A DNA stretch of 64,000 nt from Bispira polyomma (Eukaryota), in NCBI GenBank assembly GCA_965649765.1, contig OZ287756.1:5394001-5458000 (forward strand). The letters are read 5' to 3'. Shown piece after piece: positions 3,901-59,407 of this stretch. The position numbers were made by a program, and so were the translations under genes. The notes beneath the pieces are model-generated. The model made no database searches, was not told the origin of the DNA, and saw only the letters and a program-made list of their open reading frames with translations. How positions within the stretch are numbered: position 1 is the stretch's first letter; the number at the start of each line of letters is the position of its first letter.

Positions 3901-6727
3901 ATTAATGGGGTGCTCAATTATATTTGTCCTCCCATATTTGCTTCCCTGTACCATGTGGCGAAGTCCTGGGATGGTCTATATATAGACAGAACCCCTGCAA
4001 CTTCCCACCACATCATGGGTACGGTCAACAAATACCGGGACTGGGAAACAAAGGGTGAAACAAGGTTAAAGATCAAGGTCCAGGTCAAAGTTATATCCTA
4101 CCTACCAACATGAAAGATGACCCAGATGATTGAAATGGCAACATTTGAATAGCTACTTTCACCATACATTGCCTCATCGCCGTCGCGGATAACCAATACG
4201 GGGCAACCCGGCTAGTCTCCCCCCAAGGAACTGGCCGGCTCCTCACCTGTCTCTTTGGGACTAGAAGTACCTATGCCCTGGCTGTTGTAGCCCAAACAGA
4301 ATGGTGGTTAAAACTGCTAAGTTTGATGAAATGATAGTGATACTTCCCCATGTGACCACCTACCCATGAGGGGTACCCCTACCCCCACCACAGGGGATGG
4401 GGTACCAAAGTATTAAGGTATCCTCCAAGTATCACTAAATGAATGAGGTGAATGATATTATAAAATTACAGTAATGAAAATAAAACAGGGGAGAAACTTA
4501 TCACTATGATAGGCCAAATCAAACTGACAGCCAACTCCCAATATCTAGGTCAAACTTTATCCCCATGCTTGATAACTATTTGGTCAAAAATTGGGTATAA
4601 TGATATTTAAATATAATGAAAATTCATCCCAAACCCCCCCTATCCCCACCAAATATGTTGTTACTACTGTTAAAACATAATGAGTATGAACCCTACCTTG
4701 ATTAAGCTAAAATAGTTAAATTCCAATGCACACAAAAAAAAACCATCCACAACTCTTTGTTCCCAATATGAAAGAGAGAGAGATCCAGTCTGGAAGCCAC
4801 GAGGCTGTCCTCCCAGAAACACCCACAAAATCTTATTGGCTCAGCCAGCTCACACGACAAACATCCCACCTTATATCTCCCTGTATATAACCCATCTAAA
4901 TATAGTAACTCCTGATGACCTCAGCTTGTTTACATCTATTTAGAATACTTCAGTACTGGGTAGTTTTAATGCAGCATTTGAAACAGCTGAAAAACCTAGC
5001 CAAAATCAGGCTGTATTTACTTTTTGAAATTCCCAATTTTGCTTGGTGAAATTACCGAAATTTGGCAACTTAAGGGTCTCATGGAAATGGCATTCGCCAC
5101 ATAATTATGAATGAAAAATGAATTAAAGGCATTCAAATTAACAAAATAAAATATAAAATCTCACAATTTGGCGATGATACAACTTTAATTTTGAATGAAA
5201 GTAAGGAGTCCCTTTTGGTAGCTTTAAATGTTTTAGAAATTTTTGGCTCAATGTCTGGTTTGCAGATAAATACTGATAAAACCAAACTTATATGGATTGG
5301 TAAAAAACGAAACTTAAAAGACAAGATTGATGTAGGCAAATCATTGGTATGGGAAGCAACTACTTTTCATCTTTTTGAGATTAACTTTTCAATAAACTTG
5401 AATGAAATGATTCATATAAACTACCCTCCTACTATTGAAAAACTATTATTTTATGTTTGGAACCAAAGGTATTTGACACCCCTGGGAAGGGTAACTATAA
5501 TTAAAACATTCGCATTATCTAAACTAAAGCATCTGTTTCTTTCTTTACCATCTCCTGGAAAGGCAATTTTAAAAGTTATTGAAAATATGTTCTATAAGTT
5601 TATTTGGAGTGGTAAACCTGACAAAGTAAAGAGAACAATTTTGACAAGACAATATCTGGATGGTGGTTTAAAAATGATACACATCAACAACTTTGTGTCT
5701 GCACTTAAAATAACTTGGTTACGTCGCTTTAATAATAATTCACATGCTCCATAGGCTAAACTAGCAATAAATTTCATCGGCTATGACGAGCTTTTTTGCT
5801 TAGGTCAAATTACTCCAGAAATATTGCTAGAAATATTGACTATAAATTTTGGATGGAAACTTTAAATAGTTGGAGTAACATTATAGAGAGTCTAACTGAT
5901 CGCAGTGACGATCTATCTTTACCAATCTGGCACAATACTAAGGTATCAAAATCTAACCTTTACTGTCCCAAATGGTATAATGCAGGTATTGTTTCAATAG
6001 CCGATTTGATTTGTAGTAGTGGAGAGTTTTTGACCGAAAAAGAATTGAATTCTATTTATAAAATTAAAACTAATTTTCTCGAATATCTCGAATATTATTT
6101 TTGGATTCGCTTCCTGCAAAAGTGCAAAGACTATTATCAATTTAATATATTTAACCGCAAAAGCTTTCATTTTTAAAGTTTCAAGAAGAAAAGGTTTATT
6201 ATCACAACAGACCTTTAGTAACTATTTAAAGCAAATTTATACTGAACGGGAATATGCCTCAAAATTAAAAGATGAACATACAGCTTTTATCAAAAACTGG
6301 GAAAACATTCAGAATCTTTTTGTTTGACATTGTTGTAATTTAGTAAAATTAAATGTGGTTTGTCTACGTGCATTTGTATTGTTTTTATTGTGATATTTTC
6401 GGCTTTTTTTTCTCATTGTGTAATGTAATATCAGTTGTATCAAAGTCTTTCCTATTGTTATTGTAATTGTACTGTCATTTGTATTGTTTTTTATTGTGAT
6501 ATTTTCTGATTTTTGTTTTTCATTGTGTAATGTAATGTCAATTTTGTCATAGCTTCTTTCCTATTGCAACTGTAATGTCATTTGTATTGTTTTAATTGTG
6601 ATATTTTCGGATTTATTTTTAATTTTTTTTTTTCATTTTGTAATATAATATTAGTTGAAGAAGTGTCTTTCCTATTGTTATTGTAATTGTACTGTCATTT
6701 GTCTTATAAAAAAATTTAAAAAAAAAT
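997..6727 (+). mobile_element. 5'-truncated, degenerate L1/Tx1-clade LINE (ORF2 RT fragments), interrupted by a nested insertion
   Basis: Motifs KCPGVDGFPAEFFKVFW, NWRPISLL, DFQKAFDSV, RGCRQGDPI, SQFGDD, LTPLGRVTIIK, GGLKM; stops and frameshifts; repetitive 3'UTR and A-rich tail. TSD TTAATGTCA at 988-996 and 6728-6736; empty site at 49230-49238. Confidence 0.9.
1847..5101 (-). mobile_element. 3.25-kb non-coding TG...CA insertion (LTR-retrotransposon-derived) nested in the L1
   Basis: Ends TGTAG(T/C)GG...TTCGCCACA; 4-bp TSD TAAT (1843-1846, 5102-5105). Removing it rejoins the L1 frame (...YLLIMNEK...). No credible protein ORF. Confidence 0.75.
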
Positions 6728-7069
6728 TTAATGTCACTTGAAGACAAACATATTAAAATATTTCTGAAAAAAAAAAAGATTTTTGTGTTAAATGTGGGAA
6801 TATATAAACTTTTTTTTTAAAGAATTGAAGGCATTGAAAGATTTTAAAACTGTGAACTTTTACCATTTCTGCAAAAAGTTGTAGTTTTACACCTATCTCT
6901 GGACACACAGTGAATTGGTATGTCATATTTAAACTGACATATAAGCCTTAAAGTGGAGTGTTAAAATCAATAACTCTTGGTATAGATGTATGTGTACAAC
7001 ATAATGTCAGTATAATAAAAAATTATCTATCTATCTTTGTTTGGTTAAGACAGTAAAACTCTGATTCAA

Positions 7070-7450
7070 TTGTTGTATATTTGATCTTCATATTAATTTT
7101 GTAATTCTGTAAACTTTCTGGTACATATTCTGTGTGAATATAAGTTGTATATTTGATTTTGGCATTAATATTGTAATTATGATTCTTTGATATGTATTCT
7201 TTTGTGTAACTATGAGTTGTATATTTGATCTTGATCTTACTTTTGTTTTTGTACAGACATATTCTTGCCAAGACATATTCTTGGAAGGGGTGGTACTCCT
7301 CACTTAAAACAATGTCATTCCATAACTCAAACGGAAGAGATGGTACTTCTTTCTTAAAACAATATCACTCTATAACCTTAATGAAAGAGGTGGTACTTCT
7401 TTAGTAAAACAATGTCACTCCATAACTTAAATGGAAGAGGTAGTACTTTA
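7070..7450. repeat. two short minisatellites (~72-bp x3, ~50-bp x4)
   Basis: gttgtatatttgat recurs at about 7072, 7144, 7216; a ggaagaggtggtact-like motif recurs about every 50 bp from ~7283. Also at 27050-27430. Confidence 0.6.
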
Positions 7451-7830
7451 TCAAATCCAGTAGTCTAAATGGCTGCTAACAATGAAATTAGCCATAGGGA
7501 TGGCAGTATCTAGTGACAAATGATTTCTGATTCTTTTGATGTTACAAATGTGATAGTAACAGGAGTGACAAATGTTGCTGTGTATCAAATGTGTGTATTA
7601 AATGAGAAAGTGGAATCAATGGTGACACCAAGGCTCTTGACAGTATTGGAGGGCTGAATATCATTGCCCAGTAGTGTAATGGGTTTGAATTTGAATTTGA
7701 AACCACTAGGCCATACTGGGTAAAACTGTAATATGGTAGAAAACCCCTCCTGGATTTTGGTTATTTTGTCAGTTAAGAAATTGCCAAATTTATTAGATAA
7801 AAATGTAAGGCAATAACTGTCGGGCAAAAC
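7445..7830 (-). mobile_element. L2-clade LINE fragment (internally deleted relative to unit 2)
   Basis: Translates to PITLLGNDIQPSNTVKSLGVTIDSTFSFNTHI, matching the L2 ORF at 60025-61149. Confidence 0.75.
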
Positions 7831-9442
7831 TCGTTTAGATGTACGGTGGAGTATTATTATCCACAGCTTGAAAGGTTGAACTTAAAAGTGATTTTAATTT
7901 AAAACAGTAGAGAAGCATTAGAAATATCTTTACAGTGATTGACACAATAAACCAAACCTCTTTGTTGTTGATTTTGGGTTTAACAACGTCGTTGGACCAT
8001 GAATTTTCAGTTTCCAATGGGTGACTAGAAATATGACTCCTTCAGTTTCCAATGGGTGATTTAGACTATGAGTCTTTCAGTTTACATACTCCATGATTTT
8101 TGTTTAGGTTCCAATGCGTAATTTACAACCTAACTTCGTTGCTGGTCCCATGACTCTTTTCCTTTCAATGGGTGGTTGCGACTATGACTCTTTAAGTTTC
8201 CAATAATTGGCTGGGCCCATGAGTTCCCTTGTTTTTGACAGTTTCACGTATGTCACACATGTTATGCCAATTGTAGAACCTATAACCACACAACACATAA
8301 TAACAGAGTTATTCAGTATTATTGTCACTAGCTTCGACAGCTAAAACTAGTACTGGGCACTACAGCAGTGATTATGTTTGGAGAACAAAATGGTAAGAAT
8401 GTTAGATCATCAGTGAAATAATAGTCTATATAATAATATTTATTTACTTGGCCTAAGTCTAAAACCAAATGTGACTGAAAAACATTTTAAACATTTTAAA
8501 ATTTTAAAAAATCATATTTCTGACCAAAACTGTCAACACCTCTTTAACTTGCTGATACATATTTAGACACCCCATCCATTCTTAATTTTCCTTGGTTAAT
8601 AATAAGGACAAAAGTAACTGTTATGGCTGCAATTTACAAAAATGGCATTAATCATACCTTTCCTTCAGGAACATAAATAGTGATCAGGGCCACAGACATC
8701 TATAAAGTTTAAGTGAAATAATGATTTTATTGACATATTTTTTCCATGTTTTTAAAGGATCAATTCAAGTTAAATGTCAATATTCAGAAAGATAAGTGTC
8801 ATGCAAATTATTTGTTATCCTTAGGATACACTGTTGTTTCAATCAAATAGTGTCAGAAACTATTGCTAGTCTCTCACCAATATGGGTTCGAACCCCTTTG
8901 TTCCTTCATGTTAGAAAGTTTGTCAGCACCCTTCAGTATAGTCAATCTGGTGTGTAGTGGAAAGTAAAAATTTGGAAACAATTGGCAATAGACTTGCTAA
9001 AACCTGGTAATTTGAAAACTTTACCATCTACCCGGACTTTATAAATAATAAACTGGCTATTGTGGCATGACACATATTGATTAAACCAATGTTAATCTAA
9101 TTAAATTGATAAGCCTGTAACAGGACAGTATTGATGTCAGCATACATATATTTTTGGTAAATTCAAGAAAAGTTGAATTACTTTTCAACTAAAAGATAAC
9201 CTAAAACCAATTACACATTTTACATGACCATATGTGACCAACGTGAAAGTTGTTAGTATACTTATATAATGAGTATACTGGTACTAATATTTGTACCAGT
9301 AATAAAACATGACTTTATTAATGATAAGTTATATTGTATATTGTCAGTTTTTGATATACCTTGCTTAAATTTATATCGAAGGATATTACTGTTTTTCGTG
9401 CTGTTTTAAGTTAAATCTTATAAACAGTAATTCAATACATAC

Positions 9443-9723
9443 CTGCTATGTAGAAATATGGTATGCATCTTATTTCAAAATCTTTTTGGATGGCAACTGT
9501 AATATTGATGTTGCCAACATTCGTATTTTATTGGTCACCACCAGACAAGGACTTTTGACATCCCTAAGAAACATCACTAATGTTGTATGTAAGACATATT
9601 CTTGATCTGGACGGGAACTTAACAACTCACTTATTTTGATAAAAACTGGTGCATTAGAAGTTACATCTTTTGCAGCAGTAGCATTGATCAGGTGAGTACT
9701 GGTTGAATAGTAAGGTGATGTTT
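9443..9723 (-). pseudogene. orphan duplicated exon 2 of the CHST15-like sulfotransferase, frameshifted
   Basis: Homologous to 55600-55881 with both splice sites kept. It is 281 bp instead of 282 bp (1-bp deletion near NKNVNVG); neither the catalytic exon nor exon 1 is present in the unit. Confidence 0.85.
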
Positions 9724-10329
9724 CTGCAAATAGAAAAAAGCACAATTAAGCAAAACTAATGCATCGACAGATCCAGGATTCTGTAAAGGGGGGGGGGGGA
9801 GGGTCTGCCTCCAGAATTCATTGTTAGATTCATATTTCCTAAAATGTTAGGGGTTCCACATTCACAAAAAAGGTCTTAATGTTTACTGGTCTTAGTCTCA
9901 ACTCGATGTTTTTGTCATGGATAAAGACTCAAAAGGGCAACTAACGCTAAATAAGCTCAATGGGCCCTTAAAGGTTGCATTAGCTATAGTACAATTCACT
10001 AGGGGCGTAAAAATAATGCATTTTTAAATGAATGAAAACTACATCCTGCAGGATGATAACTATTAAATTGGGTGTGTATTATGCCTGCATCACATCCAAA
10101 CACCATCACACAACATCAGGCATCGTTGGAAGAAATGTGAGATTCATGCAAAAAATTGAAATTTTCCACCCAAAAAGATTGCAAAGAACTATTTTTTTTC
10201 CATTACCTAATGTCAATTTTACTGTAAATCAATTTCACTTCCCTTCCTCTGAAGTCCTTCTTGTCGCCCCTGAGTTGTCTCCAATCGACAAGGCCCTGCC
10301 ACGCTTCTCCATTTCAATTCATCATGCAA

Positions 10330-10835
10330 TGTTGAAAAATGTCCCAAAAAGTTTTATTACCTCGCTTTAACGATCAGACTATTCCTGTGACCGTCCCCTA
10401 CCATATGATGCTTTTCCTGTCTGTCTCTAAATTTTACTATATGTTATTGAATGTCATACAATTTTTATTTTCTCTTTGCCCTTTTCCCCCGTTTACCCTC
10501 CGTCATGAGCCTTTAGTGAAATTTATATGCTGCCCCCGCAAGTGTCCTTCCATCAGCTTCCGTTATTTGAACTAACCTTTTCAATCCATCGTGCAACATT
10601 GAAGAATGTCCTAAGAAGTGTCATAACCTCGCTTTAACCGTCATACTATTCCTGTGACCGTCTCCTACCATATGCTGCTTTTCCTGTCTTTCACTATATG
10701 TCACTGACTGCTATACAATGTTTACTTCTCTTGCCCTTTTTTAACCATTTATCCTCCGTCACGAACCTTCAATGAGATTTACATGCTGCCCCTGTAAGTG
10801 TCGTTTTATCAGCTTCCGTTATTTGAACTAACCCT
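10330..10835. repeat. local tandem duplication, ~250 bp x2 (also 38200-38700)
   Basis: acctcgctttaa...ctattcctgtgaccgtc...ccatatg...cagcttccgttatttgaactaacc occurs twice in a row. Confidence 0.65.
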
Positions 10836-11508
10836 TTAAATTCGTCCCCAAAAGCCAGGAACCATTGCACTCTGTTACATTATGTCACAAACAGCAAGAA
10901 AATTCTGTTACTAACTTTTTGTTCCAGCTTCTCTCTTCCGCATACTTCCCTATGACAGTTTCCCTACTTCTGACTAAGTGGCCCAGAACTTCACCTCCTG
11001 TCACACACCCTTTCTTTATATCCATAACCCTCAACTCTCTTTCCTGCAAGTCTGTAACCGTTGAATCAGGTCACTGAGCATAATTTTTTTTTCTGTCCGT
11101 TCACGTAAAATTATCCACATAAAAGGGCAGCCACTCTGGATTTTTTTGGCATTTAAATTTTTGCAAAGACAGGAATACATGATAATTAGACGAATGCAAT
11201 TGTTTCTACATGCTTATGTTGCTGTGCTTGCAGGACACCAAAACATGGGCACGATGTTGTGTTATGGATGAATGCTGCAGGTGCCAGGAGAAGGCGGTTA
11301 CACAGAAGACCTTGGACTAGATGTTGAATACTCAAGAGACCTGGATATGGTCTGCATTAGAACTTATTTGGGGACTTAGAGAGGAATGATCCTGTATCTT
11401 ACAGGAACCTCACTAGATGCGCACCAGACTTATTCCAGTTCATATTATAGAGAACCACACCACATATCCAAAGAACTGCAAACAACTTCAGGCCTCCTGG
11501 CAGGCCAG

Positions 11509-11750
11509 GGCTGGTATTCTCGAACGTATACTCAGCTTAAACTCATACTCAACTCAAATACAGGCCATGTGAAATTCATTGTACATGGAAATAACCTATA
11601 CTTGTGACCATTCATTTTAATAGAGCTTTCAACACTGAATTCAAATATGAAGTCAGATTTTGGATATTTTTGCTGTGTCCAGAGCTATAGAGAATCCAGA
11701 TTTGAGCTGAGTATGAGTTTAAGCTGAGTATACGTTCGAGAATACCAGGC
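11509..11750. mobile_element. PIF/Harbinger-type MITE
   Basis: ~50-bp TIRs (GGCTGGTATTCTCGAACGTATACTCAGCTTAAACTCATACTC...); TSD CAG at 11506-11508 and 11751-11753. Copy at 39377-39618; decayed relatives near 49720-49940 and 56730-56870. Confidence 0.8.
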
Positions 11751-11996
11751 CAGGGGCACAGTTAGAACCAGACCTAAGATATAAGAATATCAGATATCTT
11801 GCCTCTAGCAGTATACACAGTGACATGCAGATCTTGGTCTTTGATTTTGTCCGAAAAGATTTTTATTTTGGTCTTAGATCTAAGAACATTTATTAGCTCA
11901 CTGTTAACATTTTCTCTTAACACTAAAACAAACAGTATGCAAGTGTTAAACATTTTAGACCCTTTTGAGAATATGGCCCCAGTAAACTAAATTTAA

Positions 11997-12185
11997 AGGG
12001 GCGAATATACCTGTTCAAATCTGTCATACGAAAAATTGAATAAAATTATTTCACTTTCCTGTCCGCCATCCAAAAAAAGGCGTATCTTACTTCTGTGTTT
12101 TCTTAGACTATAATTTTTTCAAATGATGGAAACGGACGTTGGATGACAGATTTGAAAGCAAAATCGGATAGGTGTATTCACCCTT
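11997..12185. mobile_element. Tourist/Harbinger-like MITE
   Basis: Imperfect TIR AGGGG(C/T)GAATA(T/C)ACCT, flanked by TAA on both sides. Confidence 0.6.
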
Positions 12186-12427
12186 TAAGATTCTGATTCA
12201 CCCAGCATTCTGTGGCGAACTAAGGCTATTATTAAGCACTGGCACCCTAAAAAGAGCGCCGTTTCGACATCTAGCCCCAGTGATTACTTGGTGTGGCCGT
12301 TTTGACACCAAAAGAATAAATGTTTTAGTGTCAAAATTGCCACACCAACTACACACCAATGCAAATATATCATCGAGGCTGTCAAAATGGCCCACCTTAG
12401 TTGATTCAAATCAAAAGACCCCAAAGG

Positions 12428-12717
12428 CGAGTTGTTAGCATTATGAGGGATTCCATGCATATACAGGCTTCACAAAGTGAGTTCTCAGCATTACAAGAGC
12501 TTTCATGCATATACAGGCCTCACAAAGTGAGATTTTAGGGTTACGAGGGCTTCCATGCATATACAGGCTTCACAAAGCGAGTTGTTAGCATTACGAGAGC
12601 TTTCATGCATATACAGGTCTCACAAAGACAGCTCTTAGCATTACGAGGGCTTCCATGCATATACAGGCCTCACAAAGCGAGTTGTTAGCATTAAGAGGGT
12701 TATCATGCATATACAGG
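12428..12717. repeat. 50-bp minisatellite, ~6 copies (also 40298-40587)
   Basis: CATGCATATACAGG starts at 12454, 12504, 12554, 12604, 12654, 12704. Confidence 0.9.
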
Positions 12718-13896
12718 CCCCAGTTAATGTTAACCATACCTTTTTGAGATTTCAAACCAAAAAGCAGTTTCAGTTGGTCTGTGGGCAGCAACTGAATGAA
12801 GGTCAGTACTAACAACAATACAAATACCAATATAACTCCCCCAAACAATACTCTCCTGCAATATCTATAATTTTTCATTTTTCAGAAAAATAACACCGTG
12901 ACATCGGCAAGAATGGGAGGCAAAGCCAAAAATTTTTGAACATGTTCAAAATGTCCATGGGTGGTCGGCTCTGAAAGTACATCTTGAGAGAACTGGACAA
13001 AAGGGGTGTGGTCGTAGCATAAACAGGGCTTAAACTGCTTAGAAACTTGATCTGGCCAGACCTGGAGTAATTTGCTGTAATCTGGAGCAAACGTTACATT
13101 CACGTGTGACGAACTGCTTAGATCAGCGTAGGTCTGGGCATAAATTTGTCATAAACTGGTAAGATCTGGTCAAAACTGGGCATATCCTGGGCATAAACGG
13201 GGTTGATCAGGGCATAAACGGGGGATTCAAATATATGCAAATAAACATTTCGCCGCCTTTCTCTTCCGACCAGCCAAGTTCTAATGGTAGGGAGTGAACT
13301 GGTATAAAAGTGGTGCGAACTTGGACAGTGTGACTGCCACATAATTAAATTAAGTGGAATTCCATAATCTTTAATCTTAATTCTCGTATACATGAAACAT
13401 GATACAGAAAGAAGAAAAAAAAATAATAATAATACTCATAATACACACATTACGCACGCTTGCCGAAGTCTTTCACAAGCCAGTGAATACAAGTCATTGC
13501 TGGCTGGCTGTGTAACAGGTGAGAGTATAACAAAAAATGTATTTATCTATGCCGGATCAATACTTGTATTGCATCACAAGGCTTCACCATGAGTATTGTG
13601 TACAAATATGACGTTCTACAGAGATTTCAAATAGTGTGACGTCACAATGCAAGAATCGACGTAGAATTCTATGAGTATTTTATTCACTTTGTGACAAACT
13701 ATATCAGCGACGTATTTGTGTGTTTACGTTACTTAACCCTTAAAGTCACTTTATTATTGCAGTACATTTTTTCTTCTGCATTGAATTAAAAAAAATTAGC
13801 TACAAACTTTTAACATATATTGTGTTTTCTTTGTGTTTTCATTGCATTAGGTCACTAAAGACAATATAGAGGTTGTTTATATTTCCCATTTTTCTG

Positions 13897-14580
13897 GGGC
13901 TGTATTCACTAAGATGGATCAAGCTGAGCGAAAAATCAGCTCAAGATCAGCTCAGGATTAAGATCAGCTCAAAAAAAGGCTCAGCTGATCTTTGGATCAA
14001 ATCAGTATTCACAGAGCAAGGATCAGCTGAGCCAAAAATTAGATAATTTTTAAACAACAAAAACACAAGTTTAAGTTTTTATACATATTAAACAGCTGTT
14101 ATATGAATTAATTTCCATTTAGATTATATTTTTATGCATTACGTTAATTATTGTAAGCAAAAGAATATTTTAAATATTTTGGTTTTAATCCAAAAACTTA
14201 AGCTCCGCCCACTTTTGATCCTTGAAAAATACACAAAACATAGCCTCTTTTCACAACAATTTAAACCAACAAAGAACTGTAAATAGCTACTCTTAAAATA
14301 CCATATGTAAGTTTAAAGAATCCGAGATAATTTATCAAGGATTAATTTTATGAACACATTGTTAGTTTGTTTATTACAAAGCTCCAAACTTTGATCCAAA
14401 TCTTGATCTACCAAAATGGATGGATCATAGTTGAGCCAAAAGATGAGCGAAAAATCAGCTTAACATTTTAGTGAATACCAAATTTAATCTGATCCAAAAA
14501 TTTGAGCTAATTTTTGGCTCAGCTAATTTTTGGCTCAACTTGAGCTGATTTTTCGTTGATCCCTTTTGTGAATACGGCCC
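13897..14580. mobile_element. PIF/Harbinger-type MITE
   Basis: TIRs GGGCTGTATTCAC...GTGAATACGGCCC, subterminal CAGCTCA/TGAGCTG repeats, TSD CTG. The unit-2 copy (41542-~42205) has a damaged right end. Confidence 0.8.
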
Positions 14581-15419
14581 CTGGTCACCTTTTTTTGCTT
14601 TTTTTTCAGTTAAATCAGTTTATTCACCCTTTTTTTACAGTATTTAATTTCACTGACTACCGGGGAGGCGAGCGTGGAAACCTTCCATCGGTGTCTCACA
14701 GTATGATTCATACACAGTATGAATACATAAATACATTAAATTGTTAATTTTATGTTGATATAACTAAAAACAATTTTTACACAAAAGACTCAAGACACAA
14801 CACTACAATGCTACAGAATAGTTTGTGTATATTCAACTAACTTATTAAAAAATTCATATTTTTTCCATTTCTGCATGTGACACACAAGACCTAACAAATA
14901 AGTACATTTATTTGTTTTTCATTCAAATAGCACTTGAAAATATAAAAGTTTGCTTGTAGAATTAAAGTGTTAACTTCTCTGTGGTGTAAAAGATTTTTTA
15001 AATTGTATTCCAAAGTTATATTTCTCAAACTAAAAAATATGACATATTCTTTATAAAATTTTCCCCAAGTTTTAAATAAATTTAACCAGTATGTTTTAAC
15101 TTGTGAACATTTATAAAATAGATGCTCAATAGTATGAGTTTCTGTGCTGCATATGTATCAATTTGGTTCACTCCTTTTTTCATTTGATAAAGCAAATTTG
15201 TCTGTGCTAATAAACCGAAAAATATCTTGCATTGCATTTCTTTTACTTTATTCTCTATTGATAGCTTATTGTACTATAGTGAAAGTTAGTGAACATACAA
15301 TATCTTCATTGCTTTTGTTTTATCTTTCCTCCAAATATTGGCGACAAAAGATGATCATCTGCCTGACTACAACTTCTGTTATAAGCATTGCACATAACAA
15401 CATTGGATTTTGACTTAAG

Positions 15420-16870
15420 CTCTGACTTATTTTTACCACCCGAGCTACTAGAACTACCTTCATGATGTATACTGTCCTTATGGGTACGCTGTGTTAACCT
15501 TGATCTGAGGTTATGGATCTCAAATTCAAATTTTTACACTTAACTCTGCCCTTCTCCATTTATAATAATATCTGACAGTGAGCACTCTCTACAGTGTACC
15601 ACGAGGTCTCTAAGCCATCGCCCATAAGCTGCATACCATACTTGAGCATGTTATTTCTAACCTTCTCATCCCTTTCCTCATGTATACAGCCTAAATACCC
15701 TTGAAACCACATGACCTGCTTTTTACCTGAGATATTATAACAGAGCTCATGGGGCCAATTTATTACATGCTTTACATTGTGTTCGGAAGTTCTTTGAAGC
15801 CCTGATTTAACTTCTTACCACTTTCCTCGGGTGATCTGTAGAGCTGTGAGCTATGCTTATGCAGCCGCTTGTCCACCTGCGCCTGGATCTGCTTATTGGA
15901 TTGTAAGTACCTCTGGCTGGGTAGAATTACATCGTCCTGGTCATCATAGTCAGCATGGAATTCTGGGTCATAATCTGGTTGGTTTTTATGCCTGCGTTGT
16001 GGGATATTAACAGACAGTTCCTCGTCTGACTGGATGTCAGGACGATAACCACGTCGCACAGGTGAACTCTGCAGACTCTGTGAGCATCTGCAGACAACTT
16101 ATAGTCCCGATCCCTCCTCACATAGCTCATTTTGTTCTCCAACCGATTTAACTTCGCCAGTATTATATACAATTTGCTAGACTGTTCAGTTTCTCCTGGT
16201 ACCTGCTCTTCCTGGGTAATCCGCCTGGTGCCGAGGGCTCCATCACTGGGTCTGCTGTCCTCTTCCTGGGTCCTCTTCCGACTCCTGATGACAGGGAGTG
16301 TATCCATATGATTTAAAATACATTGCCTTCCCACAGGCCTCTGATGCACGGTCGGACACTTTTTACAATAGGCAGTCTTTAATGACATTTTTGTTTCCTA
16401 AAATGGTCTATGTATTGTCTGAACACTGTAAAATAAAACGTGAGGTGCTGCAGGTTATGCTTGCCAGAAAGGGAAGTGTGTGTAAATTATAAATAAAATA
16501 AAATGATGAAACTAAAAGCTTTCAGATAAAACATGCTAAGCGTGGAAAGAAAATATTGGCACACGTCTCTTTATGATAGGCTGAATAAGCCAAAACAAGC
16601 ATAAATTACAGAGTCCCCCAAGCACAACGACTCAGCATGTCTCCCAGCAAGCAACTAATGACCCTGAGGCTCTTAAACAGGGGATTTTATAGTTGTTGCT
16701 TTCCCTAACACACAACTTGGAATGACCCATTACTAGAATGGGGTGAGGGGTGAAGGGTTTATGTTTCTAAAAGGGAAGGAGGGTGTCCACCTCGGACTGA
16801 CCTTACGTGCTGCGCAGCTTACTCACAAAATAACTTATTAGCAATAACCCCCGGCTCCGACAATGATCCC
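15420..16870 (-). mobile_element. degenerate DIRS/Ngaro-like (tyrosine-recombinase retrotransposon) ORF1/gag remnant
   Basis: Frameshifted pieces give N-terminal CKKCPTVHQRPVGRQC and KSGLQ...VINWPHE...WFQGYLGCIHEERDEKVRNNMLKYGMQLMGDGLETSW...AHCQILL*MEKG, a motif pattern I associate with DIRS-group ORF1. No RT or YR seen. Confidence 0.6.
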
Positions 16871-17293
16871 TTGCTTTAATAAGTTAAGGTGGGTATAACC
16901 CTCACTTAAGGTAAGCTTACCTGAACTTAAATTTTAAGTGTTAAGGTTATTATTTTATATTAGCCACACATTTTAACATTACTTAATATCTGAAATATTA
17001 AGTAAAGATGACACTAAAATTTATGTATAACCCATTGGTATACATATTGGCACTGGAAGATACGACCACACATATATGCACTTGTCTGTATTGTTCAGAA
17101 CTTGCGTGGAGTATTTTTGTAACCTTGATCCTGCACTATAAATCACATTCATACGACACCAATGTTCAGTACCAAAGTATGTAATAACAATGCTAGACAT
17201 TCGTCATTAACCTTTAAGAAGATGACGTTTTGCATTGCTCTTTTTTTCTTTGTAAAAGTACCAAATTTCTATTGAGTTCACTGCAAATTTGTG

Positions 17294-17330
17294 TATAAAA
17301 AAAGGTAGTTTGTACTGGTATCTAATCACT
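17294..17330 (+). promoter_or_regulatory. TATA box and putative initiator of peptide gene copy 2
   Basis: TATAAAA at 17294-17300, Inr-like TCACT at 17326-17330, ATG at 17356; same layout at 44911. Confidence 0.6.
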
Positions 17331-17355
17331 CCATTGGTTGTTTGACTACACTACA

Positions 17356-17448
17356 ATGCTGAAGCTGCTTGTGTTGAGCCTGTTTTTGCTGGCTGGTCTG
17401 AATGATGCTGGACCTCTGCAACAAAGGATTCTTGGTGAAGAGAATGAG
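17356..17448 (+). CDS. Cys/Tyr/Pro-rich prepropeptide copy 2, exon 1 (signal peptide + pro-region)
   Basis: MLKLLVLSLFLLAGLNDA-GPLQQRILGEENE then donor GAG|GTGGGT, phase 0, in frame with the acceptor at 20600. Too short for the ORF track. Confidence 0.8.
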
Positions 17449-20400
17449 GTGGGTGTTTGTATTGTATGTTTGAGTTTGTATTAGTTTCGAACCAGCGAGA
17501 CGAACACACTACAACTGTTATTGTATTTATCAGTGAGTATACGTTTCCACTTTGTTTCAGATTCGTCTTCATTCAAAGCACTTTGTTTATATCCTTGATT
17601 ATTAGTGAGCATTAGTGGATATGCCACATATATTTTGGGATGTTTAAAACATTTCTGTTAAAAAGCTATTTCATAAGGGGTTTTGTCAATTTTTTCCAGT
17701 AGCGAGGTGTTGTTGGCTCGTTTTGCATTAGTGTCAATTAGTAGCAGCTAGATACAAATTGTTGGTATTGGTGAGGAATTATTGTGTATTCAGTAGTGTT
17801 TATGATGTCTTTATTTCTCATGGGTGGGCATTAGTGTGTATTCAGTAGTGTTTATGATGTCTTTGTTTCTCATGGGTGGAGATTAGTGTCAGTCGGTAGG
17901 TATATGTCAGTTTTGTAGCCCAAGCTTGTGTCAGATTGTTACAAATATGCCACAACTTTGCGGCGGTGGGTTGGAGGGATGAGGAGGTCTCTTCATGAAC
18001 AATAGGCCACGAACCAGAATTTACTATATACACCAAAACGGCTGAATATTTGTCTATATCTGACCAAGCCATTAATGCAGGTATAATTAAACTTTTAACA
18101 TAGAGATTTTCCTTGGTGCCTGTATTTTAAATATAATCCAGGTATTTTTCATTCAGCACAGGGCACTACCATCTTAGAAAAAATATGTAAGGCCTTTATG
18201 GTTGGAAGCAATCAACTGGTCCAAACTGAGGGGTGTGACATTATTGTTAATTTATCAAGCATAAATTTGCTTAGGATAACTTATTATTCATCAATCAGAG
18301 ATTTTTACTTGTTATAGCAATTAGGAACTCTAGTACTTTATTTCAAGCAAAATATTTTTAGAATTCACTCAAAACATTTAGCTTTTCTGTTAACTTTAAT
18401 GAAGAATGTCCACATTAGCTAGTGTGTATGTTATCTTTATGCTGGGACAGCATACATGTGCATATTGCAACTAAAGGAGCTGAACTTGTTTTCAATCAAA
18501 ATTTAGCAAATCCATCAGAACTTTTCAGTTTCATCAGGCATGAAATGTAGTAAATGTCTAAGTTCGAATTAGTGTCAAAACATTGATATCACAAGCAAAT
18601 AGCATCTATTAAACGTAATAATCTAATGATAAGATCATTCTCTTGATCGCATCAAATGCAGTCAGATAAAAATATTGAAAGCCACTCGTGATTTTTGTGA
18701 AAATAATGATTAGAGATTTAAAATACAAAAGTTTTAAAATGGACAATTGAATGGGATTCATTATTCATGTGTATATTTTACAAAAATTGTCATGTAGCTT
18801 TAATTTATTTTTTAAAATATTCTTATTAATACACTAATATAAAATATACATTTCACATACACACAATAATTTTTGCACACATATTACATTAACATAAAGT
18901 ACTGAATACTATTATGAATCTATGAAGAATTGTATCAAGGGATATAAATTAATGTAAAGACAAAACGTATTAAACGATTGACAACACGCCCCCCCCCCCC
19001 AAAAAAAAAAAAATAAAATGAGATTAATATATTTTATTATTACAACTAAACATTTCTTGTTGCATATATATATAGATATTTATATATCTATATAGTATGG
19101 CATAACAAGGTGAATTTATAATAGTAAGAATTCTGCTATGCTGAGAGCATTATATATTATTATTATTATTAATATTATCATTATTATTATTATTATTATG
19201 ACATTATTTCTAACTTGTTCATAATGTGCTCATTCAGCACAGATACATTCTTCCCATATACATATTTCAAAAAAGTATAAGCCGGTGATAAGAAAATAAC
19301 CTGTATTTTTTCAAGTGAATTACACATAAGCCTGTACATCAATCTGTACATCTATATATATATATATATATATCCAAATGTCATCCAGGTATATATATTT
19401 TTTTAATTAAAACTTACAAAATACTGACAGCTGCAGTGAAACGAATCTTCTATCGTATTTAGACAAAAGCATGTGAAATACAGACATAAGTTAGTAATCA
19501 AACCAACATATTAAGAACATATTGGAAACATAAAAAGCCACTTGGAAACAGAACTGTATATGTCACAGAATCTTAACATATGTCACAGAATCTTAACATA
19601 TGTCAAAGGTCTCCAGTTAAGATTAGGAACATTTAAGCTAGCGGTAAAGATGGGCAGATACAAGAAACAAAAATGTGGACATGTGGAGTGAGAAAGCACA
19701 TGTAAAATCATGCATTATTATCGGCTTGTTATCAGCTTATTATCTTGTTATCAGCTTATATATAACACTTATTGTGGTAATTTTAATGTAACTGTTTTGT
19801 GGACTGATCAATAAATGAGCCTTGTTGGATCATTAACTTCGTAAAATGATACTAATATGTAGTTGTTATGTAGAAAAGTCATTTTTGAATGTAAATTACA
19901 CACATACACCCAACCAAAACGAAAGACCTCAGCACATAGAAAATAATAGAAGTCTTTGTGTTTCATCCCTTGTTTTAAAAATTGGGGTAAAAAAAATCAT
20001 GGTAACCTTGACTTTCTGTTAAAGTCACCTCAAAGCTTAAAGCTTTTCTTGGGGGATAATGAAAACTCAAGTTAAGGTTAACATACCTAATTAATCTATT
20101 GTTTTCAAAATTGGGTTAAAACAAATCATGGCGGCCTTAACTTGATGTTAAGGTCTCCTCAAGTTGAGTTTAACTTAAAATGCATTTTTAAATGGCACCC
20201 TGTGCAATGCTTGTGAACATGTCTTTTGGGCACTGTATCAAATGCATAATACACTGTAGATAAAGTTCGGCTGTTCAATCTTTCTGTGGTAGGTTTCTGG
20301 CGGACAAAAAATTGTGTGATTGAAATATTATTGTGTGATTATTTTCTCAGAGTGGCTTTTGTTTGCAAACTAACTTTTTATGCATGTGTATTTGATGGAA

Positions 20401-20599
20401 GAGCTAAAACACAAAACCATGTGGTACACATTTTAGGTATCCATGGTGTGATTTTAATAGAAATGGTTCATTATTTTACAATAGAACTAAACTATTTCAG
20501 CTCGAAAATTAAGCTCATTTTAAATGATCAATGAAGTTGGATAAATGCATGAGGTCAAAAACACTTGTTTACATTATATAATTCCTATAATAATTGTAG

Positions 20600-20920
20600 G
20601 TGGATCACGTGAGAGACAAGAGAGCCAGTGGGCTGTTCTACTGTTACTACCTGGCTCATCACCTGTGTGACCACTACATTCCCACCTGTAGTTCTTACAC
20701 AATCTCCTATGTGTGTGCCCATGTCATAAATGTTCCCTCCGCTTACAACCCTCCCTGCTATTACTACGGCTACTACTACTACACCTGCTGTTGCTACAGA
20801 TACACCTGCAACAACCCCCCAACTCCAGCCCCACCGACACCCGCCCCGTCCCCACCTTCCCCACCATCCCCACCAATCCCTCCAATCCCACCATTTAGGG
20901 AGGAATTTGAAATTCCTTGA
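20600..20920 (+). CDS. Cys/Tyr/Pro-rich prepropeptide copy 2, exon 2 (chimeric between copies 3 and 1)
   Basis: ttgtAG|GTG acceptor; 106 codons plus stop; spliced product 137 aa. Confidence 0.85.
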   Translation: MDHVRDKRASGLFYCYYLAHHLCDHYIPTCSSYTISYVCAHVINVPSAYNPPCYYYGYYYYTCCCYRYTCNNPPTPAPPTPAPSPPSPPSPPIPPIPPFREEFEIP

Positions 20921-21262
20921 TTATAGTGAGAGCAAGAGAGAGGAAGAGGTGTGGTATGGAAGATCTGTGTCATGCCTCTGTGAATGGCTGAAACATATTG
21001 AACTTATTTGATGTAAATACTGATAATAATTAATAAACATATCAGTCATATTGCATTTCTTGTTTTCTTTAGTTGTTTTAGAGGGAGGCCCGCAAAAACA
21101 CAATCTAAAGTCTAATTACAAATTTGATATAAGACTAACAGCATTTTAAAATTGATTGTACACTTTATGATAGAGATAAAATAGTTTGATTGTGTTGTCG
21201 ATAACGTGTGAGTAAATTTTAATCTCTTGAGTTTAGAAGAAACATTGATTAACTTAATGTCA

Positions 21263-24200: not shown

Positions 24201-26709
24201 GGTAACCCAGCAAGTCTCCCCCCAAGAAACTGGCCGGCTCCTCACCTGCCTCCTTGGGACTAGAAGTACCTATGCCCTGGCTGTTGTAGCCCAAACAGAA
24301 TGGTGGTTAAAACTACTAAGTTTGATGAAATGATAGTGATACTTCCCCATGTGACCACCTACCCATGAGGGGTACCCCTACCCCCCCCACAGGGGATGGG
24401 GTACCAAAGTATTAAGGTATCCTCCAAGTATCACTAAATGAATGAGGTGAATGATATTATAAAATTATAGTAATGAAAACAGGGGAGAAACTTATCACTA
24501 TGATAGGCCAAATCAAACTGACAGCCAACTCCCAATATCTAGGTCAAACTTTATCCCCATGCTTGATAACTATTTGGTCAAAAATTGGGTATAATGATAT
24601 TTAAATATAATGAAAATTCATCCCAAACCCCCCCTATCCCCACCAAATATGTTGTTACTACTTGTTAAAACATAATGAGTATGAACCCTACCTTGATTAA
24701 GTTAAAATAATTAAATTCCAATGCACACAAAAAAGAAACCATCTACAACTCTTTGTTGCCAATATGAAAGAGAGAGAGATCCAGTCTGGAAGCCACGAGG
24801 CTGTCCTCCCAGAAACACCCACAAAATCTTATTGGCTCAGCCAGCTCACATGACAAACATCCCACCTTATATCTCCCTATATATATAACCCATCTAAATA
24901 TAGTAACTCCTGATGACCTCAGCTTGTTTACATCTATTTAGAATACTTCAGTACTGGGTAGTTTTAATGCAGCATTTGAAACAGCTGAAAAACCTAGCCA
25001 AAATCAGGCTGTATTTACTTTTTGAAATTCCCAATTTTCCTTGGTGAAATTACCGAAATTTGGCAACTTAAGGGTCTCATGGAAATGGCATTCGCCACAT
25101 AATTATGAATGAAAAATTTATTAAAGGCATTCAAATTAACAAAATAAAATATAAAATCTCACAATTTGGCGATGATACAACTTTAATTTTGAATGAAAGT
25201 AAGGAGTCCCTTTTGGTAGCTTTAAATGTTTTAGAAATTTTTGGCTCAATGTCTGGTTTGCAGATAAATACTGATAAAACCAAACTTATATGGATTGGTA
25301 AAAAACGAAACTTAAAAGACAAGATTGATGTAGGCAAATCATTGGTATGGGAAGCAACTACTTTTCATCTTTTTGGGATTAACTTTTCAATAAACTTGAA
25401 TGAAATGATTCATATGAACTACCCTCCTACTATTGAAAAACTATTATTTTATGTTTGGAACCAAAGGTATTTGACACCCCTGGGAAGGGTAACTATAATT
25501 AAAACATTCGCATTATCTAAACTAAAGCATCTGTTTCTTTCTTTACCATCTCCTGGAAAGGCAATTTTAAAAGTTATTGAAAATATGTTCTATAAGTTTA
25601 TTTGGAGTGGTAAACCTGACAAAGTAAAGAGAACAATTTTGACAAGACATTATCTGGATGGTGGTTTAAAAATGATACACATCAACAACTTTGTGTCTGC
25701 ACTTAAAATAACTTGGTTACGTCGCTTTAATAATAATTCACATGCTCCATAGGCTAAACTAGCAATAAATTTCATCGGCTATGACAAGGTTTTTTTGCTT
25801 AGGTCAAATTACTCCAGAAATATATTGCTAGAAATATTGACTATAAATTTTGGATGAAAACTTTATAGAGAGTCTAACTGATCGCAGTGACGATCTATCT
25901 TTACCAATCTGGCACAATACTAAGATATCAAAATCTAACCTTTACTGTCCCAAATGGTATAATGCAGGTATTGTTTCAATAGCCGATTTGATTTGTAGTA
26001 GTGGAGAGTTTTTGACCGAAAAAGAATTGAATTCTATTTATAAAATTAAAACTAATTTTCTCGAATATCTCGAATATTATTTTTGGATTCGCTTCCTGCA
26101 AAAGTGCAAAGACTATTATCAATTTAATATATTTAACCGCAAAAGCTTTCATTTTTAAAGTTTCAAGAAGAAAAGGTTTATTATCACAACAGACCTTTAG
26201 TAACTATTTAAAGCAAATTTATACTGAACGGGAATATGCCTCAAAAATAAAAGATGAACATACAGCTTTTATCAAAAACTGGGGAAACATTCAGAATCTT
26301 TTTGTTTGACATTGTTGTAATTTAGTAAAATTAAATGTGGTTTGTCTACGTGCATTTGTATTGTTTTTATTGTGATATTTTCGGCTTTTTTTTCTCATTG
26401 TGTAATGTAATATCTGTTGTATCAAAGTCTTTCCTATTGTTATTGTAATTGTACTGTCATTTATATTGTTTTTTATTGTGATATTTTCTGATTTTTGTTT
26501 TTCATTGTGTAATGTAATGTCAATTTTGTCATAGCTTCTTTCCTATTGCAACTGTAATGTCATTTGTATTGTTTTAATTGTGATATTTTCGGATTTATTT
26601 TTAATTTTTTTTTTTCATTTTGTAATATAATATTAGTTGAAGAAGTGTCTTTCCTATTGTTATTGTAATTGTACTGTCATTTGTCTTATAAAAAAATTTA
26701 AAAAAAAAT
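21263..26709 (+). mobile_element. L1/Tx1 LINE, unit-2 copy (extra ~0.3-kb deletion near 21317)
   Basis: Duplicate of 997-6727; TSD TTAATGTCA at 21254-21262 and 26710-26718. Confidence 0.9.
21810..25099 (-). mobile_element. 3.3-kb TG...CA nested insertion, unit-2 copy
   Basis: TGTAGCGG...TTCGCCACA; TSD TAAT at 21806-21809 and 25100-25103. Confidence 0.75.
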
Positions 26710-31228: not shown

Positions 31229-32041
31229 TGTTACGGTGACGGGAGCAAGCGCGGTAGCAATTACTGGTTGCTTTGAGGTTGTAACAGGAAAAGACAAAAA
31301 GTTTCACTTAACAAATTTATTTTAACAAATAAAATAACAATTACAGAATTACAAAATTATACAATTACAAAATTACAAAATTACAGTCAACTGAGATACC
31401 CTTAATAGCTCACACAATAATACAATAATGAAATCAATCTGACCTGACCACAGTCCTGTCCACTCAAATAACAATTAAACCAGTTTGTCCACTGTATCCA
31501 GCAATCTGTCTTGAGATCCGCTCAATGTCCACACAATGCCTGTATCCTGTTATCTGTTCAGCGTCCACGCACACAAAATGTATATATCCAGAGAATCTGC
31601 ACAACTAAGCTATCCAGTCCAGGATGCAAACAATATCCAATATGCAGTAAATCCAATCTCTGGTAGATCCACAACTTTTAACTAGTTCACTCCAATGAGT
31701 TCACCACAAAATGTATATAACAAACAGTATAGTAGTTCCTATAGCATTCATATAGCACCTCAGCTCAATTAAATCTCTTCTGTGGCCAGGCTGTCAACCC
31801 TTATATATACCACTGCTAGAGAAGGTTGCTAGAATGTGTAAGCAATCGCTAGGACATTCCAGAGATGAGATATACATATGAATACAACTTTAATAACCTT
31901 CAGAAATAAAATAGAACCGGTTTCTAGAAGCTTAGGGGTTTCCCCAAATCTATAAATAGCTCACTCCAGCAGAGTGTAAAACCATTAATACTAACTAGAC
32001 CGGTTTTTCTTCCACACACCACAATGTCCCCATATGTAACA
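31229..32041 (-). repeat. 3' LTR
   Basis: Near-identical to 37116-37928; preceded on the minus strand by the polypurine tract. Confidence 0.95.
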
Positions 32042-32241
32042 CCTCCCCCCTTAAAGAAAAATTTTGGAAGCCGAGGGGTTACAAAATTTCATATTACACA
32101 AAACATAAGTGAATATACAGTGTACATATGTAATAACATTCTATGGAACATTGTATTTTAAGTTACACAAGTAATATCCATATGTAAACATCTAAGTTTT
32201 ACAAGTTACAACTTTTCAGTTACTAACATACAAAATATCCT

Positions 32242-35200
32242 TTAACTACAACTTCTTGATAGAGCATCAGCACAAATGTTATCCTTTCCTTTAACATGCT
32301 CTATTTGTAAACTGTATTCTTGCAAAACCAAACTCCAATTCAATAGACGTCTGTTTTTGTTTTTCATTTTGTGCAAGAATACTAAAGGGTTGTGATCTGT
32401 GTACACAATAGTTGGTTTTGATGATGAAGAGATATATATATCAAAGTGTTTAATGGCTAAAATGAGGGCTAAACATTCCTTTTCTATTGTAGAGTAATTC
32501 TTTTGATGTACGCCAAATTTTTTTGAAAAATAACAAATGGGATGTTCAATATCTTCATCATCAGTCTGCAGTAAAACTGCACCTGCCCCAACATCACTGG
32601 CATCCACAGCTAACTGAAATGGTCTACTGAAGTCTGGAGCAGCTAATACAGGCTCCGAACAGAGAACACTCTTTACTTTGTCAAATGCTTTTTGACATGC
32701 TTCAGACCAGTGATATTTTACGTTTTTTTTTTTTTTAAGAGCTCAGTCAGTGGAGCAGTGACATCTGAGAAATTTTTACAAAATTTTCTATAATAACCTG
32801 ACATTCCCAGGAACCTCATTAAACTTTTCTTATTTCTAGGAATGGGATAGTCAATGATGCTTTCAACTTTTGCTTTAATTGGTGTCACAACTCCATGACC
32901 GACTACATGCCCTAAGTAAACAACCTTCGCTTTTACAAAGTCACTTTTTGATAGATTCACAGTAAGGTTGGCTTGTTTGAGCTGAAACAGAACTTGTTCA
33001 AGTCTTTTCAAATGTTCTTCCCAAGTATCACTAAAGATGACAATATCATCCACATACACTTCAACCCCTTCTAAGTTCCTTAAACATATATTCATTAGTC
33101 TCTGAAATGTAGCTTGGGAATTTTTCATGCCAAATGGCATTACCTTGTACTGATACAGACCATCGGGAGTTACAAATGCTGATATTTCTTTTGCCCGTTC
33201 AGTAAGAGGTACACACCAGTAACCTTTCAATAAGTCACATTTTGTGATATATTTGGCTTTACCAATCCGATCAATACAATCTTCCATTCTTGGGATAGGA
33301 AATGAATCGGTTTTACTCAAAACATTAACCTTTCTATAGTCTGTGCAATATCTGATAGAACCATCAGGCTTCGGGACCAAAACACAAGGAGATGCCCAAC
33401 TACTTTGACTTGGTTCAATTATATCTTTGTCCAACATGTATTGCACTTCTTGTCTTAATTTTCCAAGTTTAATCGGGTTTACCCGATATGGGTGCTGTTT
33501 GATCGGAATGGCATTGCCAACATCAACATCATGCATGAGTACATTAGTCCTGTTAGGGGCATCAGGAAATACTGACTTATACTTCAAGAGTAACTCGCTA
33601 AGTGGGATTCTCTTATCTGGAGGTACATGATTCAGTTTGGTTTCCAAATCAGCAAGAATTTCTGAATTACTCAACCTAATTTTACAGTTAACTTCAACAT
33701 CAGGAGTGTCACCCCATGCTTCATGCTCCTGATTGTTATCATTTTCCACATTACAGTCAGTAGCCATGACAGGCTTTGTCACACCCCTTTCAAAGTATGG
33801 TTTTACCATATTTACATGACACAGTTGGGTTGACTTCCTTCTGTCCGGGGTTTCAATGACATAATCCAGATCACCTACTCTTTTTAACACTTTGTAAGGC
33901 CCATGATATCTGGCCTGTAACGTGTTCCCCTGGACAGGTAATAGCACTAAAACCTTGTCTCCGGGTTTAAAAACACGGTTTTGTGACTTTCTATCATAAA
34001 GCCTTTTCATTTTTAATTGAGAATGTTTCAGATTTTGTTGCGCTAGCTCACAAGCCTTTTTCAGCCTACTCCTAAACTTTGAAACATAATCTAACAGGTT
34101 TAGGCTCTCAGAGTTCTCGGATAACCAATTTTCTTTCAACAATTTGACAGGACCACGGACTGAATGACCAAACACCAACTCAAAGGGACTAAAGCCTAAA
34201 GACTCTTGCACTGATTCCCTAACTGCAAACAATAATAAGTTGATGCCTTCATCCCAGTCTTTCTCATTGTCTAAGCAATATGTCCTAATCATATTTTTTA
34301 AAGTGGAATGGAACCTTTCAAGGGCACCTTGTGATTCTGGGTGATAAGCACTAGATTTGATCTGTTTGGCACCTAGCTGAAACACAACTTGCTGAAATAA
34401 TCCTGACATAAAATTTGACCCTTGATCTGACTGGATCTCCTTTGGTAAGCCAACTAAAGTAAAGAAATTGACTAAAGCTTTTGAGATTTTCGGGGCTGTT
34501 ATGTTGGTCAAAGGTATGGCTTCAGGGAATCTGGTTGAGGCACACATAATGGTTAGGAGATATTGGTTTCTGGATTTAGTCTTTGGTAAGGGGCCTACAC
34601 AATCAATTATCACTTTGCTGAATGGTTCCTCAAATGCTGGAATGGGTTTTAGAGGAGCTACAGGAATCTTTTGGTTTGGTTTCCCCACAACTTGACAAAT
34701 GTGACAAGTTTTACAAAATTCTGCCACACAGTGCCGGATTTGAGGCCAGTAGAAATGCTGGGTTATTTTGCCATAGGTTTTGTTGATACCTAAATGACCA
34801 CCCATTGGAGACTCATGAGCTAACCTCAATACATCATTTTGGTACATTTTTGGTAATACAATCTGATGAAGTATTGACCAGTTCTCAGAGGTAGGGACAC
34901 TTGGCGGCCTCCACTTTCGCATAAGCACACCATTTCTGATATAATAGCCTACTGGGACCTTATCTAGCTCTACTGGTGGTAACACCAATTTGAATAGAGC
35001 GGCTAATTCAGGGTCATTTTCCTGCTCTACAATCAATTTTGATTTTGAGAGTGATACATCTGGATCATCAAATTGGTCTTGTTTCCCAGAATCTTTCCTA
35101 CCTTTAGGGTCAATCTCACTATGATTTTGCACATCATGGTCACAGTTGTTTAAGAATGTATCTGATAAATCAACTAAGACATCTGCAGATTGTTTACAAT

Positions 35201-37004: not shown

Positions 37005-37090
37005 TTTGAGCACTGTTGACTGTAATATATTTTCAAACAAAATAAATGATTTTTCAAAAAGCTATGAAAATAGTTAGATCAAATGGTTAG

Positions 37091-37108
37091 ATCCCGGACG
37101 AGCCCCCA
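37091..37108 (-). promoter_or_regulatory. primer-binding site, tRNA-Pro
   Basis: Minus strand TGGGGGCTCGTCCGGGAT, the canonical 18-nt tRNA-Pro PBS, 7 nt inside the 5' LTR boundary. Confidence 0.9.
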
Positions 37109-37115
37109 ATTTTCC

Positions 37116-44972: not shown

Positions 44973-45065
44973 ATGCTGAAGCTGCTTGTGTTGAGCCTGT
45001 TTTTGCTGGCTGGTCTGAATGATGCTGGACCTCTGCAACAAAGGATTCTTGGTGAAGAGAATGAG
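44973..45065 (+). CDS. Cys/Tyr/Pro-rich prepropeptide copy 3, exon 1
   Basis: Same MLKLLVLSLFLLAGLNDAGPLQQRILGEENE|GTGGGT; TATAAAA at 44911-44917. Confidence 0.8.

Positions 45066-46905: not shown

Positions 46906-46907
<2 letters not shown>

Positions 46908-46990
<83 letters not shown>
46908..46990. repeat. (TA)n microsatellite, much longer than its homologue at ~19353-19373
   Basis: Directly visible. Confidence 0.9.
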
Positions 46991-46992
<2 letters not shown>

Positions 46993-59402: not shown

Positions 59403-59407
59403 GGACA

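Follow-up and report, generated by a model that had tools for sequence, protein, structure and literature searches.

A three-gene family predicted to encode a secreted, cysteine- and tyrosine-rich prepropeptide in the annelid Bispira polyomma

A 64,000-nucleotide (nt) stretch of the Bispira polyomma genome (assembly GCA_965649765.1, contig OZ287756.1, positions 5,394,001 to 5,458,000 of the forward strand), referred to here as the window and numbered from its first letter, was analyzed with respect to a two-exon gene proposed in an initial annotation made from the sequence alone. The gene is present as three complete tandem copies, its open frame is under purifying selection as judged by comparison of the copies, and no relative was detected in the protein and structure collections searched. 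The explanation that best covers these findings is a taxonomically restricted family of three genes whose product would be secreted, processed by a convertase and used as a cross-linkable unit of an extracellular material; the chances of this explanation being right as a whole are about even.

Gene structure and constraint on the open frame

Copy 2 of the gene consists of exon 1 (17356-17448), which translates to 31 residues and is followed directly by GT, and exon 2 (20600-20920), which is preceded by TTGTAG and translates to 106 residues and a TGA stop. An in-frame TAG (20597-20599) lies immediately 5' of exon 2 and Met is absent from this exon, so that its translation requires splicing to an upstream exon. 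The borders are GT and AG in all three copies, both exons fall on codon boundaries with matching phases, and the TATA box, splice signals, phase, stop codon and AATAAA signal are intact in each copy (Table 1). GC content is 0.47-0.52 in the exons, as opposed to 0.31 in the intron. The two phase-matched exons and the TATA box had been placed at these positions by the initial annotation, and the coordinates, translations and splice borders all agreed on reanalysis; the second model (copy 3, 44973-48724) and the additional exon 2 (copy 1) that it listed are likewise present.

The claim of three tandem copies was borne out when exon 1 of copy 1 was located outside the window, giving three complete genes. 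These three are the total for the whole 1.04-Gb assembly, which was searched with both exons at the DNA and at the protein level. A six-frame search of the genome to an expect value (E) of 10 gave no further copy; it returned weak rows (E 0.4-8) on C11 and C3, which were read out, found to be unrelated, cysteine-poor frames, and rejected as extra copies. Exon 2 of copy 3 differs from that of copy 2 by two residues, a Ser to Pro change in the tail and a Phe to Ile change close to the C-terminus. The core of the mature product is identical in copies 2 and 3, and copy 1 carries a single His/Tyr change that raises its count to 17 Tyr.

Constraint was assessed in the oldest pair, copy 1 versus copy 3, with changes counted over both exons. 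Of the 14 changes in this pair, 10 are synonymous and 4 non-synonymous, corresponding to proportions of changed sites of 0.10 (pS) and 0.013 (pN), respectively (P = 2e-4). In a six-frame control count, the proposed frame alone was stop-free and it also had the strongest silent excess. Silent and intron sites have diverged by ~10%, as against 1.3% at replacement sites. Within exon 1 alone there are five silent changes and one replacement, a conservative Leu/Phe exchange within the hydrophobic core that leaves the signal peptide intact. The introns of the old copies are 78-92% identical with many insertions or deletions (indels), compared to 97.5% identity in exon 2. On the donor side a 1-nt indel falls at intron positions +3 to +5 and is followed 36 nt later by one of 28 nt, and on the acceptor side indels stand immediately 5' of the acceptor; constraint on the gene, as read from these alignments, stops at the splice sites. 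A promoter block of 226 nt 5' of the ATG, including the TATA box, is ~93% conserved between copy 2 and copy 1. The comparison of the copies thus argues for purifying selection on the open frame, and we consider it likely that this is a real gene encoding a secreted protein.

The predicted product and the search for relatives

The three genes are predicted to encode a precursor of 137 residues. Its signal peptide has a basic residue at position 3 and an 11-residue hydrophobic core with a mean Kyte-Doolittle (KD) hydropathy of 2.8, and the predicted cut follows N-D-A; signal peptide and cut site were judged by rule from the sequence (small residue at -1). The propiece is 21 residues long and ends in R-D-K-R, which is invariant in the three copies. 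It had been described as acidic, which is correct in sign, although the propiece is only weakly so, with a net charge of -1 when its two exon parts are summed. The secretory prepropeptide layout with an R-X-K-R motif, also proposed at the outset, is consistent with the conservation of R-D-K-R, and the two-exon gene looks real.

The mature product of 98 residues begins with a 64-residue head that is 25% Tyr and 14% Cys, contains four His, lacks Lys and has net charge 0. The nine cysteines of the head form the framework C-x7-C-x6-C-x8-C-x13-C-x9-CCC-x4-C, and both this spacing and the count of 16-17 Tyr in 64 residues had been given correctly. The 26-residue tail contains 18 Pro and 5 Ser/Thr, the rest being Ala and Ile, and has no Tyr. 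The mature product as a whole has no Lys, 2 Arg and 2 Gly, with a net charge of about -2. No transmembrane segment was found in the predicted product, the top 19-residue hydropathy being 0.96. A single-sequence AlphaFold model places a helix (2-18) against three strands, which suggests a compact, disulfide-rich head; confidence in the model is middling and inconsistent, so this fold is taken as a suggestion only.

Relatives were sought with exon 1 or exon 2 as single queries. No Pfam family matched either exon at E up to 10. A word-indexed search in which exon 2 was compared with 5.8 billion proteins gave no match at E <= 1, HMMER run in full against 1.84 billion representatives gave no match at E <= 0.001, and the ESM Atlas gave no relative of exon 2 or of the core alone. 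A sequence search of PDB yielded a single chance proline-rich match (E = 2), which was rejected as a relative. Searched with the single-sequence model, itself of middling confidence, Foldseek against PDB returned a best E of 4.2 and a wide VIA-align structural search a best Z of 3.6, under the usual noise. The absence of a recognised family noted in the initial annotation therefore held across sequence and fold searches, including Pfam, HMMER and Foldseek; the family has no detectable relative in these collections and, on this basis, is new at the sequence level.

The exon of a carbohydrate sulfotransferase that neighbours copy 3 has three homologues of 52-62% identity, together on a 2.5-Mb contig of another eukaryote. 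In the ~67 kb around these homologues no Cys/Tyr-rich frame and no tblastn match was found, a weak negative, as the orthology of the region is unproven.

The composition of the product recalls one family by name, and a divergent CYYR1/Shisa-like membrane adaptor, with a Cys/Tyr-rich part and a proline-rich tail, was accordingly weighed as an explanation. The likeness is one of composition and name only, in that CYYR1 also has a Cys/Tyr-rich stretch followed by a proline-rich region. CYYR1/Shisa-like proteins bind WW domains through PPxY motifs, and the tail of the worm product holds no Tyr and no PPxY. CYYR1 is a transmembrane protein (PMC13654864), whereas the hydropathy of the worm product contradicts a membrane span; the Pfam scan gave no such family and the protein searches were empty. 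This explanation is exceedingly improbable.

Proposed mechanism and competing explanations

Under the explanation favored here, the precursor would enter the secretory pathway by means of its 18-residue signal peptide, and a furin-type convertase would cut after the conserved R-D-K-R, removing the propiece. The product released would comprise the uncharged head, a 26-residue proline rod and a short acidic end. The rod is expected to adopt a polyproline-II conformation and is probably O-glycosylated at Ser/Thr. Four disulfides could stabilize the head and leave the ninth Cys as a free thiol, and at this thiol and the many Tyr intermolecular disulfide, dityrosine or quinone-thiol bonds could form. 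We infer from composition that 3,4-dihydroxyphenylalanine (DOPA), dityrosine, metal binding or hydroxyproline may be present, and that the product may serve as a cross-linkable unit in an extracellular secreted material, for instance the lining of a tube, a cuticle, a bristle or an egg coat.

In mussels and tube worms, secreted proteins rich in Tyr and Cys serve in adhesion or cross-linking (PMC12817120). Among these, mussel foot protein 6 (mfp-6) and the related mfp-20 are small proteins secreted into the byssal plaque and rich in both Cys and Tyr, the thiols of which are thought to act with oxidised tyrosine chemistry (PMC12817120). The worm product resembles them as a small, predictedly secreted protein with very high Tyr and high Cys. 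It differs from them in having no sequence similarity, in being uncharged to slightly acidic with no Lys and little Gly, and in carrying a proline rod and a convertase-type propiece; it also comes from an annelid and not a bivalve. mfp-6 is strongly basic. The sabellariid cement proteins (Pc-1/Sa-1 type) are, like the predicted product, annelid secreted Tyr-rich proteins, and are used in tube building (PMC12817120). They are repetitive, Gly-rich and basic, whereas the worm product has no repeats, is rich in Cys arranged in a single fixed framework, and shares no similarity with them. The cnidarian minicollagens are secreted, propeptide-bearing proteins in which a small cysteine-rich domain is joined to a polyproline stretch and cross-linking proceeds by disulfide exchange. 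The worm product, from another phylum, lacks the Gly-X-Y collagen part and the CX3C-type cysteine-rich domain, has a different cysteine spacing, and shows no homology to them.

The material reading is drawn from composition and from analogy with the Tyr/Cys-rich mussel plaque proteins and the Tyr-rich worm cement proteins, and a material role for the product is accordingly proposed as tentative, at somewhat less than an even chance. A more specific form of it is doubtful: the three genes would be founding members of an undescribed annelid material-protein class, in which a disulfide-knotted, Tyr-rich head on a rigid, glycosylated polyproline stalk is released by a convertase and locked into tube, cuticle or bristles via its unpaired Cys and its Tyr (as DOPA or dityrosine). 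The corresponding proposal for its chemistry, that cross-linking would be like that of the mussel plaque, reached independently and without basic residues, is an analogy to be held with the same doubt.

Several observations weigh against a selected gene for a cross-linkable material protein. Known DOPA adhesives are strongly basic and rich in Lys and Gly, which the product is not. The selection estimate is taken from paralogues and from 14 changes, and no orthologue was found in the other species searched. A 175-nt core of exon 2 shows no difference at all between the old copies, fewer changes than its silent sites should give, which makes gene conversion as likely a cause as selection. The predicted fold has a predicted local distance difference test (pLDDT) score of 72.8 in the best model and 54-61 in the other four, which is middling and inconsistent. 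Lastly, the three sequencing runs that contain the locus, all from one study, are DNA, and none is recorded as RNA. Contigs from these runs span both exon-intron borders and cover the intron, which identifies the runs as DNA, and they contain no exon 1-exon 2 joint. Most of the variant letters in the mapping of these runs match the sequence of copy 3, indicating mapping of a paralogue and not polymorphism, and they were not used as population variation.

Some of these points would also be expected if the open frame were non-functional, being untranscribed or untranslated, had been copied in a recent segmental duplication and owed its apparent conservation to youth and gene conversion. The runs with the locus are all DNA, the searches gave no homologue, copies 2 and 3 are young (their units are 97.6% identical), the invariant core of exon 2 hints at conversion, and slippage can create low-complexity runs of Tyr and Pro codons. 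Against this, silent and intron sites of the old pair have diverged far more than replacement sites; exon 1 has accumulated its five silent changes around a perfect signal peptide, the constraint ends exactly at the splice sites, and the gene signals are intact in every copy. We regard a non-functional frame as quite improbable.

A second rival accepts the gene as real and takes its product to be a diffusible bioactive peptide, such as a hormone-like signal, pheromone, toxin or defence peptide, and not a structural protein. A signal peptide, a propiece and R-X-K-R form the usual layout of bioactive peptides, tandem duplication within a narrow taxonomic range is typical of effectors, and the predicted model has a compact, disulfide-rich head. 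The furin-processed invertebrate prepropeptides, including toxins and antimicrobial peptides, share with the worm gene the signal peptide, short propiece, R-X-K-R, Cys-rich mature part and tandem copies. They differ from it in that the worm product has an unmatched cysteine framework, is not cationic, and has an odd Cys count, a long proline tail and no fold match. The charge of the mature product, its lack of Lys and the Tyr content of its head are unlike those of cationic antimicrobial peptides, and the defence-peptide option raised in the initial annotation is thus a poor fit. An odd number of Cys and a proline rod of 26 residues would be unusual in a small toxin or hormone, and the mature parts of the paralogues are near identical where diversification would be looked for. 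Comparison with defensin/macin-type (cysteine-stabilised alpha-beta) or toxin folds gave no match: the model, of middling confidence, does have a helix and three strands, with Foldseek E > 4 against PDB and a best Z of 3.6. A diffusible peptide is therefore considered unlikely, and a cross-linkable material unit is preferred.

The array, its surroundings and the meaning of the family

By self-comparison, duplication unit 1 was found to be ~97.6% identical to unit 2, which is longer owing to later insertions, with a long terminal repeat (LTR) element making up most of the extra length. Copy 2 is like copy 3 on the 5' side of a switch at 20673-20847 and like copy 1 on the 3' side; the switch falls within the invariant core of exon 2 and is the junction of the young ~20-kb duplication. 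A chimeric copy 2 with its switch inside this core is the pattern expected of unequal crossover between older paralogues. We read the array as built in two steps, an old duplication whose silent sites are now ~10% diverged, followed by an unequal crossover in the identical exon 2 core that duplicated ~20 kb, now ~2.4% diverged.

Table 1. Features of the gene copies and their surroundings, in window positions unless an assembly coordinate is given
Feature	Copy or unit	Position	Strand	Remarks
TATA box	Copy 2	17294-17301	+	TATAAAAA; 62 nt 5' of ATG
Signal peptide (predicted), exon 1	Copy 2	17356-17409	+	MLKLLVLSLFLLAGLNDA; 18 residues; cut site set by rule
Propiece, first 13 residues, exon 1	Copy 2	17410-17448	+	Ends on codon boundary, then GTGGGT
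Intron	Copy 2	17449-20599	+	3151 nt; GT..AG; GC 0.31; holds dispersed repeats
High-copy dispersed repeats in intron	Copy 2	17669-17793, 18169-18293		DNA-run contig depth to 13,000, versus ~100
Propiece end, exon 2	Copy 2	20600-20623	+	VDHVRDKR, with R-X-K-R convertase motif
Cys/Tyr-rich core of mature product	Copy 2	20624-20815	+	64 residues; 9 Cys, 16 Tyr
Pro-rich tail	Copy 2	20816-20893	+	26 residues
Acidic C-terminal octapeptide and stop	Copy 2	20894-20920	+	FREEFEIP, TGA
Polyadenylation signal	Copy 2	21032-21037	+	AATAAA; 112 nt 3' of stop; AATAAA in all three copies
TATA box	Copy 3	44911-44917	+	
Exon 1	Copy 3	44973-45065	+	Same as copy 2 exon 1
Exon 2	Copy 3	48404-48724	+	AATAAA at 48837-48842
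Exon 1	Copy 1	G000:C9:5389278-5389370		Outside window, 4.6 kb to its left
Exon 2	Copy 1	339-659	+	AATAAA at 771-776
Duplication unit	Unit 1	1364-20181	+	
Duplication unit	Unit 2	21323-47800		
LTR retroelement	Unit 2 only	31229-37928		LTRs at 31229-32041 and 37116-37928
Open frame of LTR retroelement	Unit 2	32718-37040	-	1440 residues
Reverse-transcriptase frames		1020-1658, 25105-25752, 60025-61149	+	Retroelement fragments
Duplicated 153-residue frame	Units 1 and 2	15927-16388, 43547-44008	-	ATG-started
Direct repeat		59407-59837		105-nt offset; 87% identity
Carbohydrate sulfotransferase, last exon		53870-54874	-	5 kb from copy 3
PF16915 exons		G000:C7:48557639-48568253		Two adjacent genes, opposite strands

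The 813-bp LTRs of the retroelement differ from each other at 2 positions; the element has TG..CA ends, and its 5-bp target duplication reads ATTAT. Unit 1 retains the empty site (10078-10082), from which it follows that the element inserted after the duplication. Its open frame shows the Gmr1-like arrangement, with SCAN, zinc knuckle and integrase, in that order, ahead of the reverse transcriptase. Further open frames with reverse-transcriptase domains lie between and after the gene copies. The 153-residue frame found ~1 kb 5' of exon 1 in both units has no Pfam match, is not conserved 5' of copy 1, and is probably a repeat fragment. The direct repeat near the right side of the window resembles 51328-51697 and looks satellite-like or part of a repeat element.

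The last exon of the carbohydrate sulfotransferase (GalNAc4S-6ST-like; Pfam Sulfotransfer_1) is convergent with copy 3. As this enzyme is of the carbohydrate kind and not a tyrosine sulfotransferase, no link to the peptide gene is claimed. Elsewhere in the genome, exons that pass the curated cut-off of the erythrocruorin-linker C-terminal domain PF16915, for which the control genomes gave no match, were used as a phylum marker; PF16915 is a domain of annelid giant haemoglobins.

If the three genes are not expressed, they would be one more orphan open frame. Their present value lies in being a well-defined and cheap target, with one splice junction to seek in RNA sequencing (RNA-seq) and one predicted N-terminus (ASGLFY) to seek by mass spectrometry. 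If tube- or cuticle-building gland cells express them, the product would provide a compact, easily synthesized example of Tyr/Cys cross-linking in an uncharged scaffold, which would matter for underwater adhesives and for hardened biomaterials. The family would then also illustrate cleanly how a young, lineage-restricted group of genes expands via unequal crossover within its own coding exon.

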